A DNA stretch of 64,000 nt from Klebsormidium nitens (taxonomy: Eukaryota > Plantae > Klebsormidiophyceae), in the NCBI GenBank assembly GCA_000708835.1, contig DF237405.1:1-64000 (forward strand), written 5' to 3'. Below are positions 47,449-57,532 of this stretch, one piece after another. The notes under the pieces were generated by a model. That model was not told the origin of the DNA, made no database searches, and saw nothing but the letters and a program-made list of their open reading frames with translations. The position numbers were made by a program, and so were the translations under genes. The number at the start of each line of letters is the position of its first letter. Position 1 is the first letter of the stretch.

Positions 47449-50222
47449 ATGGTGAGTAGCACCTGCCTTGTCTACGGCTGGTTCCTTTGATGTTGCGAAT
47501 AATCCTCTAGTGCCTCGTCTGACGTTTCACTCTGAAAAGACTACGGTGCTGCCATCGCATATCTTGGGTCCAAAGGAGAAAGGGGCACGTCTTTTTCTGG
47601 CGCTGGAGCTTACAGGCCTGGATGAGATTGAGATTGTTGCAGCTGGCTGCGCCTCTCAAGTCTGCATCTGTATGCGCATCGCACAAGTTTTTCAGCTTCG
47701 GTAATGGTGAAGTCATAAAGCAACACCTGACATAGTAGCTGTCAATCAATCTCATGCCCTTGAATTCTCTGTTTTGCAGGCTCGTGGTGTGAAGAAGCAT
47801 CTGAAGAGGCTCAATGCCCCGAGCCATTGGATGCTTGACAAGCTTGGCGGAGTGTTTGTGAGCATCTTTGCCTTTTTCTCTCACCGGAAGGGCAGCAGTA
47901 GGACGTGAGGGCAAAGAAGCTTTGTCACACGGCACTTGTTGCTTAGGCTTTCGAATGTTTTTATATCACATGGTAATGGTGTGGTCGACAGAATCTGCAG
48001 CTGCACTGTACTGTCTGCGCGGGTCAATGATTTCAAAATTAGATGTCCAAATTAGATTCTTTAGCAGCGCCCGGTATTTTTGATGCATTTGGCGCCAGCA
48101 TCAGTTGTACAGATGGTTGGGCAACAGGTGTTTGCAAGAACGATGAATAGCCTGTTCCGCTGGGAAGAGGTTCCTTGGTCTTTACCAGCAACACATGGCA
48201 GAGGGGCCAGGACAGATTGCTTGCTCAACCTTGGAGATTGAAATGGAACGCAAAGAGGTTGGAGAGGGTTGGCTCGCGTCAGACCGCTGCTGTCTCAGCG
48301 ACGTTCAAGCGGGGTTAAAGGGGACAGGCAGAGTTCTAGTCGACATAGCATTTCTTAGAGGACCTTGGGGATACTTCATGGTGGAGAATTGGGGAACAGG
48401 GGGACATCGCATGGAGCCCTGCCCAAAGCTTTATCAACAAACGTCGCGACGGCACTTTCAGAAGGGGCGAGGAGAGTGTTCGTTCAGGACTGTGCTAAGA
48501 AGTGGGAAAACCTACGATCTTTTGTAGAGCTGATGTTGGTGTCTTTGCACACCTTTTCAGGCCCCCAAGCCGTCCCCTGGTCCCCACAAGGAGCGCGAGT
48601 GCCTCCCTCTCATCCTCATCCTGAGGAACAGGCTCAAGTATGCCCTTACTGGCCGTGAGGTGACGGCAATCCTCATGCAGAGGCTGGTGGAGGTGGACGG
48701 CAAGGTCCGCACTGACAAGACCTACCCGGCAGGCTTCATGGGTAAGCAGCCAGGGCCATGCGCCGGCGCCGCCCTTTGGAGTGTGCTGTCAGTCGGTCCC
48801 AGCTTCCTTTCCATTCCTTGCCTTCATGTTCTAACTGTAGGACAAGCCCTCAGGACCAGTGCTTGATCAAGTCAAGATAGTTGTCATGGTCTGAGCGCAT
48901 CTCGGCAGGCGGGACACAGCAAAAAAGTATCTTTGCAAGGTGCGGAGCCCTTGTGGCAGAGATTGTCCCTTGTGGACATCAGGAGGAAAGGGACCATCTC
49001 TGCCGTAGTAGTGTCAGCAAGGTCCCGGAAAAAGTTTATCACCACCAAAAGGCGCACCGAAGATGTTTAGAGCCAAGTATGCCCAAGGCACTTACAGCGG
49101 CTGTAATGTCATTGGGGCATCAGTCAACATCTCGCACTGAGGTTGCTATCTGCTCATTCACAGATATCATCCACATTGCCAAGACCGACGAGCACTTCCG
49201 TCTTCTGTACGACTCCAAGGGGCGCTTTGTGACCCACAGGGTCACTGCTGAGGAGGGAAAGGTGAGGCCAACGCACAGCATCAAGTTTCTCAATCATGGC
49301 ACAAAGACGGGAGGCTCGCATGCACCTGGCTGGCATTAGAGGCGCTGGAGCTGTTGGCAGCTCTTGGGCCGTTGATCAATGGATAACTTGTCAGCCGTGA
49401 GCGCTGTACTGACATATCCTGCTTGGGTGGTTGTGTGCAGTACAAGCTGGCCAAGGTGCGCGCCCAGAAGGTTGGCGACCGCGGCATCCCGTACATCTCC
49501 ACCTCCGACGGGCGCACCATCCGGTACCCGGACCCGTTGATCAAGGTCAACGACACGGTCAAGATCGATATTGAGACCGGCAAAGTGATTGACTTCATCA
49601 AGTTCGATGTGGGCAACATCGTCATGGTCACGGGAGGGCGTAACAGAGGGCGAGTGGGGATCCTGCAGGTGAGGCGGGCAAACAGAACGTGGGCATCATG
49701 CATCCGGCAGCCTTTAAGAGGATCGCACTGGCGTCCGTAACCAAGTCATAATTCTGTGCATCGGTTTTTCCTGCATGTTTGTCTTGTCTCTGAAGTGCCG
49801 GCTCGCTAGCTTTGCAATGCCGATGGGGTTGCATGGGATCACAGAGATTGGTTTTCGTGTTCTGCAGAAACACATCCTTGTATTTGGACTTCCATCCCCT
49901 GAACATTCCGCCGAGGAATCTCGATTGGTTCAATCTGCCGTTTCTTGGGTTTCTCCCTGGAGCGTCTTGTTTCTTGAGGCAAGTAGGTGACGTCTGTTTG
50001 TTCCTGCGTGTGCAGCACCGTGAGAAGCACAAGGGGAGCTTCGACATTGTGCACATCAAGGATGCGGCGGGCCACCAGTTCGCCACGCGGCTGACCAACA
50101 TCCAGCTCATCGGTTCGGGCACCAAGCCGTGGGTCAGCCTGCCCAAGGGCAAGGGTATCAAGCTCTCCATCGTCGAGGAGGCCAGGAAGGCACGGGCGGG
50201 CGCGGCTAAGGTGGCGGCATAA
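47449..50222 (+). CDS. RPS4: 40S ribosomal protein S4 (eS4), 6 exons; first coding exon is the ATG alone
   Basis: ATG|GTGAGT at 47449, then [42 protein letters not shown]...[13 protein letters not shown]...[12 protein letters not shown]...[11 protein letters not shown]...FATRLTNI...[11 protein letters not shown]. Confidence 0.98.
48952..49134 (+). ncRNA. Two strong stem-loops in RPS4 intron 3 (possible intron-encoded structured RNA)
   Basis: GGCAGAGATTGTCCCTT (48955-48971) pairs with AAGGGACCATCTCTGCC (48988-49004), 16 of 17 bp. A second stem is ATGCCCAAGGCACTTACAG..CTGTAATGTCATTGGGGCAT (49079-49120), with an outer GATGTT/AACATC stem. Confidence 0.25.
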
Positions 50223-54195: not shown

Positions 54196-57100
54196 ATGGA
54201 GGATCTGAAAAAGAAAGGCAATGAAGCTGTTGCGAAAGGAGACTTTCAAAAGGCAGCCGACTTCTATGCAGAGGCATTCAAGTTCGTTCAGCCAGGCAGC
54301 GAAGCAGCTGCAGCATTGCACAGCAACCGCTCGTACGCCCTTCTAAAATTCGGCAAGGCTACTCAGGTAGGCACCACTGAGCTGAGCTTTCTGATGACAT
54401 GGACAATTCTGCTGTCCTTCGTATCCTCAGGTTCCTGTGCAATTGGTTACAGTCGGCCATGTTGAAAAGGTGCCTGTAGTTTGCAGAATAGTCTCGGATC
54501 CTGGTGGCACTGATGCTGGTTGCAGAGTCTTGCTTGAAGTTGACTTGGTTTTTGTCGTGCCTCTAGGCAGCTGAAGAGGCGGGCCGCGCAGTCACCTGTC
54601 GGCCAGAATGGAACAAGGTATGGTCCTCTGCTTAATGTGCACCACTCCACCATCAGTTTGATTTGGACGTTTGATTTGGCTGAGGTCTTACAAGCAAGAA
54701 AAAGTTTGTTCAGATCGTTCGTGCATTGACCCTGTGCTGCCACTACTTTGATGAAAGGGCCGATATGAGTCATGTGTAACTGAATGTGTGCTAGAACGTT
54801 GTGCCTCAACATCTTCAACTCTGCCACACATGCGCTCTCACATGCATGGAGCTCAGTTGATAGGGGAATTGTTGTATGCAGGGTCACTTCCGCCTTGGAG
54901 AAGCCTTGTTTGCACTGGAGGACTTTGACGGCGCAGAAAAAGCATTCGCAAGGGCGCATGAGCTGGCAAGTACCTGTGCCCAAAGTTTGCAGCTCCTGAG
55001 TGATTGAGTGCTTCGAAAGGTTGGCTGATCAAGTGATGGTCCAATGAGGGTGACTGTTTCTTGCAACTTGGTCTTTGGTTTTTGTGCCCACAGTTTTTGT
55101 GTCTTCTGAGAATGTCAGGTCCATTTTGTTCCTTGCTCCTTGTGAAGCATTGATCTGGAGCTCTGCTTGACCACCAGCGGCACTTGTGCAGGCTCCAGAT
55201 GACGCCCATGTGCGGGGAAGACTGCAAGCGTGCAAAGAAGCAAACAGTGGCTACTTCTTCAGGCAGGCAAGTAGGCTTTACGTCAATCGTTTGAGGTTTG
55301 AAAGAAAGACGTGCACTTCGATAGAGCTGTCTATGGATCCTAACCTGGAAAGCTGGGTGACTGGCCTGGGAGTCTGTCTATGGTATGTACTGGTGCCTTT
55401 CATACCATCGTCATTCCCTCTTTCTCAGCCGGTGCGAGTTGGTGTTTGCAGTTGTTCGCCGGTCGAGACTTTGCCGTCGGCACTGGCGGCATGCTCAACT
55501 TTGTGCAGAACCAGGTCTTCAGTGCGGCTCAACAGATGCGCAACTTCAGCTACCTGGTAGGCGACACTCAGACGCGCGAGTGCGTCGTGGTGGACCCAGC
55601 GTGGGATGTCAAGGTGCGGGAGCCCGTTCTCAGAGTCACTGTTACAGAAGGATTCTGTTGTCCTCTATGGAACTCAGCATTGCCACGATGAGGATGTAAC
55701 AGATCAGTATGTCATCACCTGTGCGCCGATTGGGCAAGGTGAAGATGGATACCGGACAGGTCCAAGATCGTACCTGAAAAAATGACGGCGGCCGTCCCAA
55801 CCAACCAACATTGTAACTACCAATGGGGTCAGCGCTCTTACCAGCAACTTCTGCAAAGCACCTTTTTAGTATGAATCCAGACATCACCATCTAACAAGTA
55901 AGTTGACATTCAAAGGCAGAGGAAAAGCCTAGCAACCTCAAGCCGATTTAGTCCAGTTGTCATTGCACAGTGAAGGTTTGTTGCTGCTCTTCAAAGACCG
56001 ATCTCCCGTGTGCATCTGTTGCAGGCCATCCTGGCCCGTGTGGAAGCGGAGCACATGAAGCTGGTGGGCGCCATAGCGACCCACTATCACTTCGATCACA
56101 CCGGGGGGTTGCCGCCACCGCCGTTCGACTCCCTGGGAATCCGGCTGGCGGGGGTCAAGGAGGTGGCGGAACAAGCCAAGGTGCCGGTGAGCGACGGGCC
56201 ACTGAAACGGCAGGGGCCGGAGTCTATTGACTTGAAGCTTGGCGCTGACGTGGATATTGTTTTTAAATTCGTCGCCGGTAGCACGAGAGTCAGTAGGTAG
56301 CACAGGACTTGTCTGACGGCAGCCGTATGTGCGTTTCGCTTGGGAGACAGAGTGCATTATTATGAGCAGCTGGGCTGACATGTCACAATTGATCTAACGT
56401 TCTCATAATCTTGGGACAGGTGTACGTTCATCGGGACGATGCAGCCACCATTCGGGAGAAGAACCGGGTTCCCGCATCGTCGATCCACGAAGTGCAGGTA
56501 CCTTCTTTGCTCCTTCCCCTGCTGCGCACATCGTGACATGCTTGTTTACGGGGTCCTCCATCTTCGAGCGAGCTAGCCTGCTGTCTAAAGAACCAGTCCA
56601 TCTACGTATTCAAGTTACAGGTTACCGTCTCAAGGCAATGTCCTTCCGAGACAAGCCGCTGCAGTGCCTGCTCCTTGAGGCGTGAAGGCATTCTGCTGTG
56701 CAGGACGAGGAGACTCTGCGCGTGGGGCGCGTCGAGCTCAAGTTCCTGCATACCCCGGGCCACACCCCGGGGAGCATGTGCGTGCGGATCAAGCGGACGC
56801 CGGACGACGCAACTGGCGCCCTCCTCTCGGGCGATACTCTGTTCATAGGAAGGTAAGACTGCTTCTCTGCGTCCGAGCTGCTGACACGATGGAAGAAGAG
56901 CAGTATTTCGCTGTAGCCACCAGGAGTCGGAAAGCAATATGTTTGTCCATGTGAGGTCGCTCTGCAGCAACTTCCGCAGTGCCAGGACAAGCCTTCCTTC
57001 CAACGTTGATAGTAGTAGCTGTCTTTTCGCACGTCGCCGCTTCAGGAATGATTGAGGGGCACTCCAGGGCTGAGATCTGGCTCCCCGCCTGCAGCTGTGG

Positions 57101-57532
57101 CCGGCTGGATCTCCCTGACTGCGACCAGATGGCCATGTACAGCAGCCTGCAAAGGAAGCTGGCCACCCTGCCAGACGATACAAGGTACGCGAGCTTGGAC
57201 GGAGGCTTTCCGCACTGAATTTCATGGTACAGGCGAATCCAAATCCGTGACAACCTCTAGCTTATGTTTGATCACGACGTTGCTATCTCCTCTTGCTTGG
57301 CAGTGGCCAACCATTGTATGTGGTCAGGTACATGTCGTTCCTTGCGAAGCCGTCGGATTGCATGTGGCGGCCATTATTGGGAGAACGATGCTCATTTACT
57401 CTTTGATTCTGCAGGGTGTACCCAGGTCATGATTACGGTGGTAAGTTCACAACTATTGGCTCCGAAAAAGCACGGGGCCTTTTACGGCCACTGTCAGAGG
57501 GCCAGTGGAAGGCTATGCACAGTAAAATCTGA
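54196..57532 (+). CDS. TPR-domain / metallo-beta-lactamase-fold (glyoxalase II-like) fusion protein, 9 exons
   Basis: TPR exons: LKKKGNEAVAKGDFQKAADFYAEA, HSNRSYALLK, RPEWNKGHFRLGEALFALEDF. These splice in frame to an MBL domain with THYHFDH, HTPGHTPGS, SGDTLFIGSCGR and VYPGHDYG, ending MHSKI* at 57532. Introns 3 and 4 use GC donors. Confidence 0.9.

Follow-up and report, generated by a model that had tools for sequence, protein, structure and literature searches.

A clamp-type TPR module fused to a metallo-β-lactamase-fold domain in Klebsormidium nitens: a widespread eukaryotic protein family with a predicted link to Hsp70/Hsp90

The stretch analysed here (the window) covers positions 1 to 64,000 of contig DF237405.1 of the alga Klebsormidium nitens (assembly GCA_000708835.1), and the gene in question occupies 54196-57532 of its forward (+) strand, with the ATG at 54196 and the TGA ending at 57532. 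It encodes a protein of 379 amino acids (aa) in which a tetratricopeptide repeat (TPR) module is followed by a metallo-β-lactamase (MBL)-fold domain; there are two domains and no N-terminal targeting extension. A frame check of the exons gave a spliced model of ten exons with a length of 1140 nt, corresponding to 379 codons plus stop and containing no internal stop codon. Since the open reading frame (ORF) of exon 1 begins at 54196 in the ORF list, there is no earlier start codon in frame, and a stop codon is found in the same frame shortly before it. Joined and translated, the exons match the K. nitens protein KFL_004560160 (P0305) at 379/379 residues; its public annotation reads hypothetical protein only. 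Pfam profiles run against the whole protein returned Lactamase_B (78.6 bits) and TPR_2 (40.7 bits) as well as TPR_1, while single exons scanned against Pfam and NCBIfam gave weak, sub-threshold TPR and Lactamase_B matches, these exons being too short to classify. The exons and the two introns that connect the TPR part with the MBL part are listed below.

54196..54366, + strand: exon 1, aa 1-57; start codon, TPR motif 1 (K5/N9) and start of motif 2 (N44)
54567..54617, + strand: exon 2, aa 58-74; second helix of TPR motif 2, up to W72-N-K74; GT-AG introns on both flanks
54882..54965, + strand: exon 3, aa 75-102; TPR motif 3 with clamp residue R78; Pfam TPR_2 at 27.8 bits on this exon alone
54966..55191, + strand: intron 3, GC-AG with donor GCAAGTA; needed for the frame, its removal giving the product of the public record
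55192..55266, + strand: exon 4, aa 103-127; seventh (capping) TPR helix and the first MBL residues G-YFFRQ
55267..55451, + strand: intron 4, GC-AG with donor GCAAGTA; junction sequence
55452..55613, + strand: exon 5, aa 128-181; family-specific N-terminal MBL segment with a eukaryote-only insertion at aa 143-150
56025..56186, + strand: exon 6, aa 182-235; THYHFDH (H201, H203, D205, H206) and the eukaryote-only LPPPPF at aa 210-215; Pfam Lactamase_B
56420..56497, + strand: exon 7, aa 236-261; in frame and aligned to bacterial homologues
56704..56852, + strand: exon 8, aa 262-311, ending in phase 2; HTPGH (H277, H281) and GDTLF (D305); Pfam Lactamase_B
57095..57184, + strand: exon 9, aa 311-341; C312-G-R314-L-D316, matching the substrate-channel motif C161-G-R163-T-D165 of ETHE1
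57415..57532, + strand: exon 10, aa 341-379 and TGA; PGH346-D-Y348, invariant E358/G362/L364 and a C-terminal helix ending in QWKAMH

Nine introns interrupt the gene, of which intron 3 (54966-55191) and intron 4 (55267-55451) are of the GC-AG type with the identical donor GCAAGTA, both ending in AG, and the remaining introns, seven in number, are GT-AG. Without the GC donors the frame would be lost, because the GT located 4 bases further in shifts it. A preliminary description made from the DNA letters had proposed that a three-repeat TPR module is spliced in frame through two GC-AG introns into an MBL-fold domain, and every part of this layout was recovered. A share of two GC-AG introns out of nine is high for one gene; the extended donor G/GCAAGTA occurs at 54966-54972 and again at 55267-55273. 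Within 55186-55560 (+ strand) the frame of exon 4 stays open through the whole of intron 4 as far as 55560 (a 124-aa ORF), so that retention of intron 4 in a transcript would yield the TPR with an unrelated tail in place of the enzyme.

The two halves of the protein meet inside exon 4, where the TPR ends with ..APDDAHVRGRLQACKEANSG and is followed by YFFRQ. Bacterial MBL homologues begin at the same point with LYFRQLLAGRDFA and open at LYFRQL, the counterpart of the G-YFFRQ of exon 4. In the AlphaFold2 (AF2) model of KFL_004560160 (predicted local distance difference test score, pLDDT, 95; predicted template modelling score, pTM, 0.83), helix 107-121 leads through a one-residue link into strand 123-130, and this strand runs across the junction of exons 4 and 5. 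End-to-end alignments of the protein were obtained with full-length sequences from Closterium (58.5% identity over 381 aa), Cymbomonas (48%), Salpingoeca (44.5%), Tribonema (44%) and Basidiobolus (39%) as well as with an ORF of the GILJ01 transcriptome (48%). Complete single ORFs were found in transcriptome assemblies of Salpingoeca, Amoebidium, Entosiphon and Psilotum and in GILJ01, so that TPR and MBL domain lie on one mRNA in those species. Judged by the exon 4 bridge and these end-to-end orthologues, the TPR and MBL parts of the Klebsormidium locus are one fused gene, and the earlier view of a single gene joining a co-chaperone-type TPR to an MBL enzyme stands.

The TPR module comprises residues 1-121 (exons 1-4) and is modeled as three repeats with seven helices at 2-121. 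Exon 1 on its own matched the TPR domains of HOP (TPR1), SPAG1, SGT and UNC-45 in the PDB, and the region of exon 2 is gap-free in 40 family members. In TPRs that bind Hsp70/Hsp90 the consensus clamp is made up of K5 and N9 of the first motif, N6 of the second, and K2 and R6 of the third (PMC2939883). With motif 1 counted from Met1, all five clamp residues are present in the Klebsormidium protein as K5, N9, N44, K74 and R78. In the 40-species alignment, N44 is found in 38/40, K74 in 39/40 (the other has R) and R78 in 38/40 sequences, K5 in 32/40 (plus two with R) and N9 in 23/40. The nearest natural TPR sequences of solved structure are those of HOP/STIP1, SPAG1, SGT, SGT1, RPAP3, PP5, CHIP, Tom70 and UNC-45, and the family profile scored 75 bits each against TPR1 and TPR2B of HOP. 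Superposition of residues 1-122 with VIA-align gave Z 20.5 and a root-mean-square deviation (rmsd) of 1.1 over 118 residues for human SGT, and Z 19.6 and rmsd 1.6 over 115 residues for HOP TPR1 with the Hsc70 peptide; across SGT, UNC-45, RPAP3 and HOP TPR1 the values were Z 19.6-20.5 and rmsd 1.1-1.6 over 115-119 residues. The label co-chaperone-type given to this TPR thus holds for sequence and fold (complete clamp, likeness to HOP and SGT), and chaperone binding itself is inferred.

Fusion of a three-repeat clamp TPR to a catalytic domain in one chain is also the plan of PP5, CHIP, Cyp40, FKBP51/52 and plant TDX, and PP5 is especially similar in having the TPR at the N-terminus and the catalytic domain directly after it. 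The Klebsormidium protein differs from these enzymes in that the partner is an MBL-fold enzyme and in that docking is predicted from its sequence. The domains given for the 36 Arabidopsis CC-TPR proteins and for the rice set include no MBL partner (PMC2939883).

The MBL-fold domain extends over residues 122-379 (exons 4-10) and contains all metal ligands, namely H201, H203, D205 and H206 in THYHFDH, H277 in HTPGH (which also holds H281), D305 in GDTLF and H346 in PGH, each of which is kept in 39-40 of 40 family members. A JGI metagenome protein of 377 aa (P0248) retains the TPR and the fold and has lost the metal ligands, with TAACPDH for THYHFDH, PTPGP for HTPGH and GDLLY for GDTLF; it looks like a pseudoenzyme branch.

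Beyond eukaryotes, the closest relatives of this domain are bacterial. Over the whole MBL length it shares 41% identity (203 bits) with a Nitrospirota homologue and 43% identity (176 bits) with a Mycolicibacterium homologue, and exon 5 taken alone is 57% identical to an Acidobacteriota homologue and 51-53% identical to Mycobacteriaceae homologues. An MBL protein of this kind is encoded at each of the 80 bacterial loci that exon 5 retrieved (113-198 bits). Bacterial homologues score 150-198 bits in phmmer, compared with about 80 bits for GLX2 and ETHE1 proteins of solved structure. The homologues of Mycobacteriaceae and Nocardia are 241 aa long, start with ..LYFRQLLAGRDFA.., continue with ..QQMRNFSYLIGD..CVVVDPAY and end with ..DQWRMAM, and their genes are neighboured by HadA/B/C-like dehydratases, SecE and an enoyl-CoA hydratase, a neighbourhood which we take to be that of Rv0634c on the map of Mycobacterium tuberculosis. 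On this identification, the likeness to mycobacterial Rv0634c put forward in the preliminary description was correct, since start, CVVVDPAY, end and locus neighbours all fit. The description of the MBL domain as Rv0634c-like rather than canonical GLX2 is likewise borne out by the higher bacterial scores and by a GSH_gloB match below cut-off (see below), whereas the term actinobacterial-type proved too narrow: the best-scoring bacterial homologues, those of Nitrospirota, Nitrospinota, Myxococcota, Acidobacteriota and Planctomycetota, rank above the actinobacterial ones. The domain belongs to a subfamily common to many bacteria, including Rv0634c, inside the glyoxalase II/ETHE1/YcbL group.

The Rv0634c-like bacterial proteins (about 240 aa; Mycobacteriaceae, Nocardia, Nitrospinota, Nitrospirota, Myxococcota, Acidobacteriota and Planctomycetota) are colinear with the whole MBL domain from YFRQL..GRDFA to the C-terminal ..W..M helix, but have no TPR, are without the insertions at aa 143-150 and 210-215 and form a separate clade. 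In the phyla other than Actinomycetota the neighbouring genes are unrelated, e.g. S1/P1 nuclease and AlgH. The literature on Rv0634c yielded one incidental mention in a proteomics study, and the bacterial proteins are uncharacterised. A search of the ESM Atlas also returned bacterial TPR plus Lactamase_B clusters in Aminicenantota, Thermodesulfobacteriota, Acidobacteriota and Chloroflexota with feature scores of 0.87-0.94.

A HMMER search with exon 5 showed that nearly all closest relatives are proteins of 330-590 aa in which the match lies some 130-320 residues in, and those examined are TPR plus Lactamase_B proteins. Members were found in streptophyte algae (Chlorokybus, Mesostigma, Klebsormidium, Chara, Closterium), bryophytes (Marchantia, Riccia, Calypogeia, Sphagnum, Ceratodon), lycophytes and ferns (Diphasiastrum, Selaginella, Psilotum, Adiantum, Ceratopteris), the prasinophyte chlorophyte Cymbomonas, the haptophytes Prymnesium and Gephyrocapsa, the xanthophyte Tribonema, the euglenozoan Entosiphon, choanoflagellate and ichthyosporean holozoans (Salpingoeca, Amoebidium, Creolimax, Sphaeroforma) and fungi and their relatives (many chytrids including Batrachochytrium, the aphelid Amoeboaphelidium, Basidiobolus, Coemansia, Dimargaris, Martensiomyces, Apophysomyces). 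The colinear TPR-MBL protein is thus present in at least five supergroup-level lineages of eukaryotes. No seed plant, animal or Dikarya sequence appeared in the top 120 of a fern query, which reaches fungi at 36% identity, and a word search with a Nitrospinota homologue, saturated with Nitrospinota, gave >7,998 matches with no eukaryotes among the matches listed. In the literature no paper on the TPR-MBL family and no characterised protein of such architecture turned up, in agreement with the earlier statement that none was known. A well-known and widespread architecture would, according to the preliminary description, speak against its reading; the family did prove to be widespread, but is not well known.

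Several members deviate from the common layout or are affected by faulty records. Of the public Closterium models, P0123, P0124 and P0126 are faulty, one being fused to a copia-type retrotransposon polyprotein (792 aa) and two carrying translated intron sequence in mid-protein; P0320 is the clean version. The haptophyte-type sequences P0405, P0409, P0138, P0394 and P0396 have PPPPFD..GI replaced by a longer ..MV.GPF.., and Prymnesium and P0138 have in common an N-terminal extension of about 70 aa before the TPR. Basidiobolus meristosporus and B. ranarum each have at least three paralogues, and in Sphagnum one locus lies on chromosome 4 and another on chromosome 11. P0345 (NCBI MDA9097971.1, labeled tetratricopeptide repeat protein [bacterium]) falls inside the eukaryotic clade beside metagenome sequences of marine picoeukaryote type and MMETSP sequences, and probably stems from a eukaryotic contig assigned to a bacterium in binning; the contigs on which it occurs reach 416 kb. 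A phyletic pattern linked to the flagellum was considered and rejected, as the gene occurs in the non-flagellate Closterium, Basidiobolus, Coemansia and Apophysomyces and animals are flagellate without the gene.

The history of the MBL domain was addressed with a maximum-likelihood tree of 69 rows (LG+C20+F+G4), of which 36 are eukaryotic and 29 bacterial. A tblastn search with exon 5 against plasmids detected only distant MBLs (E 0.004 or worse), three of which served as outgroups. All 36 sampled eukaryotic sequences form one clade (SH-aLRT 99, branch length 0.64) apart from the bacteria; Klebsormidium is sister to Closterium inside the streptophyte group, the embryophytes group together, and a haptophyte and a fungal/ichthyosporean group are also resolved within the clade. 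At least 80% of the eukaryotic rows, but at most 10% of the bacterial ones, carry the insertions at aa 143-150 and 210-215 (LPPPPF). In this tree, whose base is a polytomy and whose bacterial sample was chosen by similarity to the query, eukaryotic TPR-MBL is placed as a sister or derived branch of the Rv0634c-like subfamily and not inside a bacterial clade. One old fusion followed by vertical descent, with later losses in seed plants, animals and Dikarya, would be the simplest reading of this pattern. An ancient bacterial origin of the MBL domain at the base of eukaryotes is possible and is a separate matter from lineage-specific transfer.

The chemistry of the enzyme was approached by comparison with proteins of known structure and function, among which the sequence scores are close together (82 bits with human glyoxalase II, 79 bits with human ETHE1, 75-83 bits with bacterial persulfide dioxygenases and 74 bits with YcbL). 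The best NCBIfam match is TIGR03413 GSH_gloB with 98.9 bits (E 2.8e-28), below its cut-off of 200.8, and PRK10241 reached 66.4 bits against a cut-off of 421. The GSH_gloB match covers positions 9-167 of a profile of 248, indicating that the C-terminal glutathione-binding helical domain is absent; KFL_004560160 ends 33 residues past the PGH histidine. Canonical GLX2 was rejected as an assignment on account of the score below the GloB cut-off and the missing GloB C-terminal domain. Compared with GloB/HAGH and the short YcbL/GloC proteins, which have in common with it the MBL core and all metal ligands, the Klebsormidium protein is without the C-terminal glutathione-binding helices of GloB and has a CGRxD pocket instead of CGKF, YcbL giving the top VIA-align Z of 25.5.

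A number of features point towards ETHE1, beginning with the pocket residues. G313, R314 and D316 are found in 40/40 family members, C312 in 38/40 and Y348 in 39/40; R314 and D316 align to the CGRTD motif of human ETHE1 (R163, D165) and H346-x-Y348 to H195-D-Y197. R163 and Y197 have been reported to be the only glutathione contacts conserved in all types of persulfide dioxygenase (PMC6060420), and R163 and D165 form an essential ion pair in ETHE1 (PMC4383860, PMC6060420). The iron ligands H79, H135 and D154 of human ETHE1 correspond to H201, H277 and D305 and are conserved, and the N-terminal FRQL strand is also found in the persulfide dioxygenase-like outgroup sequences of Acaryochloris and Paraburkholderia. 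In a Foldseek search, persulfide dioxygenases occupied ranks 1-21, YcbL rank 22 and human GLX2 rank 28, and the family profile scored ETHE1s at 109-114 bits and human GLX2 at 97 bits. ETHE1 and type I persulfide dioxygenases (human ETHE1, 4chl; Myxococcus, 4ysb; Burkholderia PRF, 5ve3) show the same fold (rmsd 1.7-2.2 over 202-209 residues) with the three Fe-ligand positions, the R-x-D and H-x-Y pocket residues and the FRQL strand in common. Differences from ETHE1 are the N-terminal TPR, about 20 extra residues after FRQL and about 25 after HxHxDH-GG, a much shorter C-terminus, the lack of a mitochondrial presequence and an identity of only 23-32%. R/K365 is a possible match to the type I Arg. 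ETHE1 retains the GLX2 ligands and is without glyoxalase II activity (PMC4383860); because an enzyme that is not a hydrolase keeps these ligands, the metal ligands decide nothing on the chemistry. From the sequence comparisons, a persulfide dioxygenase-like chemistry and a thioester hydrolase chemistry are equally tentative candidates, and some other chemistry appears unlikely, with about half the weight of either.

Taken together, we propose that the Klebsormidium gene is a vertically inherited member of the TPR-MBL family and encodes a metal enzyme docked on Hsp chaperones, a combined reading to which we assign a probability of about 0.6. Through its TPR the enzyme would be docked on cytosolic Hsp70 or Hsp90, bound at the EEVD tail in the manner of PP5, CHIP or Cyp40, and the metal centre would then act on a thiol-linked small molecule or adduct, either by hydrolysis of a glutathione-type thioester or by an ETHE1-like persulfide dioxygenation. 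Docking on Hsp70/90 is taken to be more likely than not. A number of observations weigh against parts of this proposal. N9 is replaced in 17/40 members and EEVD binding may therefore not hold family-wide. The near-tie in VIA-align (Z 25.5 for YcbL, 24.8-25.4 for persulfide dioxygenases, 24.7 for human GLX2) means that structure does not settle the chemistry. The C-terminus continues for about 18 residues past the stretch aligned to human ETHE1, compared with about 45 in human ETHE1 itself, and the Lys/Pro contacts and Cys247 of type I persulfide dioxygenases are, from these lengths, probably absent. The neighbours of the 80 bacterial loci provide no cross-phylum functional hint, conservation being confined to Actinomycetota, and the absence from seed plants and animals rests on two top-120 lists from word-based searches and not on an exhaustive search of genomes.

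Other explanations of the locus concern its structure and its origin. That the TPR exons and the MBL exons are two adjacent genes, wrongly joined by the gene predictor and by the preliminary description, would be in line with the rare GC donor in both joining introns, but is very improbable given that the capping helix of the TPR and the strand YFFRQ, with which the bacterial homologues open, are both contained in exon 4 alone, that transcriptome-derived orthologues have the same layout in single complete ORFs and that the TPR/MBL junction is gap-free in the 40-species alignment. Nearly as improbable is the idea, raised in the preliminary description, of a patchily distributed and possibly horizontally acquired hydrolase, i.e. 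an MBL gene that passed from Actinobacteria into Klebsormidium or narrow lineages and then gained introns and a TPR. It draws on the bacterial identity of the nearest non-eukaryotic relatives (41-43% identity), many of them Mycobacteriaceae or Nocardia, and on the distance of the domain from plant GLX2 and ETHE1 (about 59-63 bits). However, Archaeplastida, Haptista, Stramenopiles, Discoba, Holozoa and Fungi all have proteins of identical architecture, eukaryotes form a single clade with two common insertions in which Klebsormidium is nested among streptophytes, and non-actinobacterial homologues outscore the actinobacterial ones. A gain of introns and TPR after local acquisition is likewise contradicted by the same colinear protein in at least five supergroup-level lineages.

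With a single, vertically inherited gene as the preferred reading, two further alternatives bear on what the protein does. The catalytic domain could be a plain glyoxalase II that hydrolyses S-D-lactoylglutathione while tethered to chaperones, for which speak the rank of GSH_gloB as best NCBIfam match, the presence of all ligands of the binuclear site, the naming of relatives as hydroxyacylglutathione hydrolase in JGI records and the VIA-align Z of 24.7 to human GLX2 and 25.5 to YcbL; with a score under half of the GloB cut-off, no C-terminal helical domain, a CGRLD pocket as in ETHE1 where the alignment to human GLX2 has CGKF, and the same ligands in ETHE1 without glyoxalase II activity (PMC4383860), we consider this unlikely. 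The TPR, for its part, might not bind Hsp70/Hsp90 at all and regulate the enzyme intramolecularly or recruit another partner with an acidic C-terminus. In PP5 the TPR can auto-inhibit its own catalytic domain, and this precedent, the one-residue link between TPR and MBL domain, the pTM of 0.83 suggesting a fixed arrangement and the variability of N9 and K5 in some members make this alternative somewhat less unlikely than a plain glyoxalase II. It is nevertheless doubtful, as N44, K74 and R78 are kept in at least 38/40 members across more than one billion years of divergence and the closest solved TPRs are all Hsp70/Hsp90 binders, some with chaperone peptide bound; furthermore, auto-inhibition and chaperone docking are mutually compatible.

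Clamp-TPR proteins that bring an enzyme to Hsp70/Hsp90, such as PP5, CHIP and the immunophilins, are central to the fate of client proteins. The gene described here points to a further, very old member of this class, whose enzyme falls into the glyoxalase II/ETHE1 group and which is conserved in organisms as far apart as chytrids, choanoflagellates and ferns. What had looked like a bacterial domain in one alga becomes a pan-eukaryotic family, and the reading as horizontal gene transfer is very probably wrong. The family has probably gone unstudied because the standard model organisms appear to lack the gene, while Marchantia, mosses, Klebsormidium and chytrids possess it and are tractable. The family would also offer a first starting point for working out what the bacterial Rv0634c-like proteins do. 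More speculatively, the family may be a Hsp70/Hsp90 co-chaperone as old as the last eukaryotic common ancestor whose enzyme acts on the chaperone or on chaperone-bound clients, for example by removing persulfide, glutathionyl or acyl adducts from client cysteines during the chaperone hold. We regard this extension as a long shot; if true, it would represent a chemical repair arm of the chaperone machinery which was missed through loss of the gene in yeast, animals and seed plants.

Upstream of the gene, ORF fragments at 49423-50222 (+ strand) of the window resemble ribosomal protein S4e and probably belong to a neighbouring gene.

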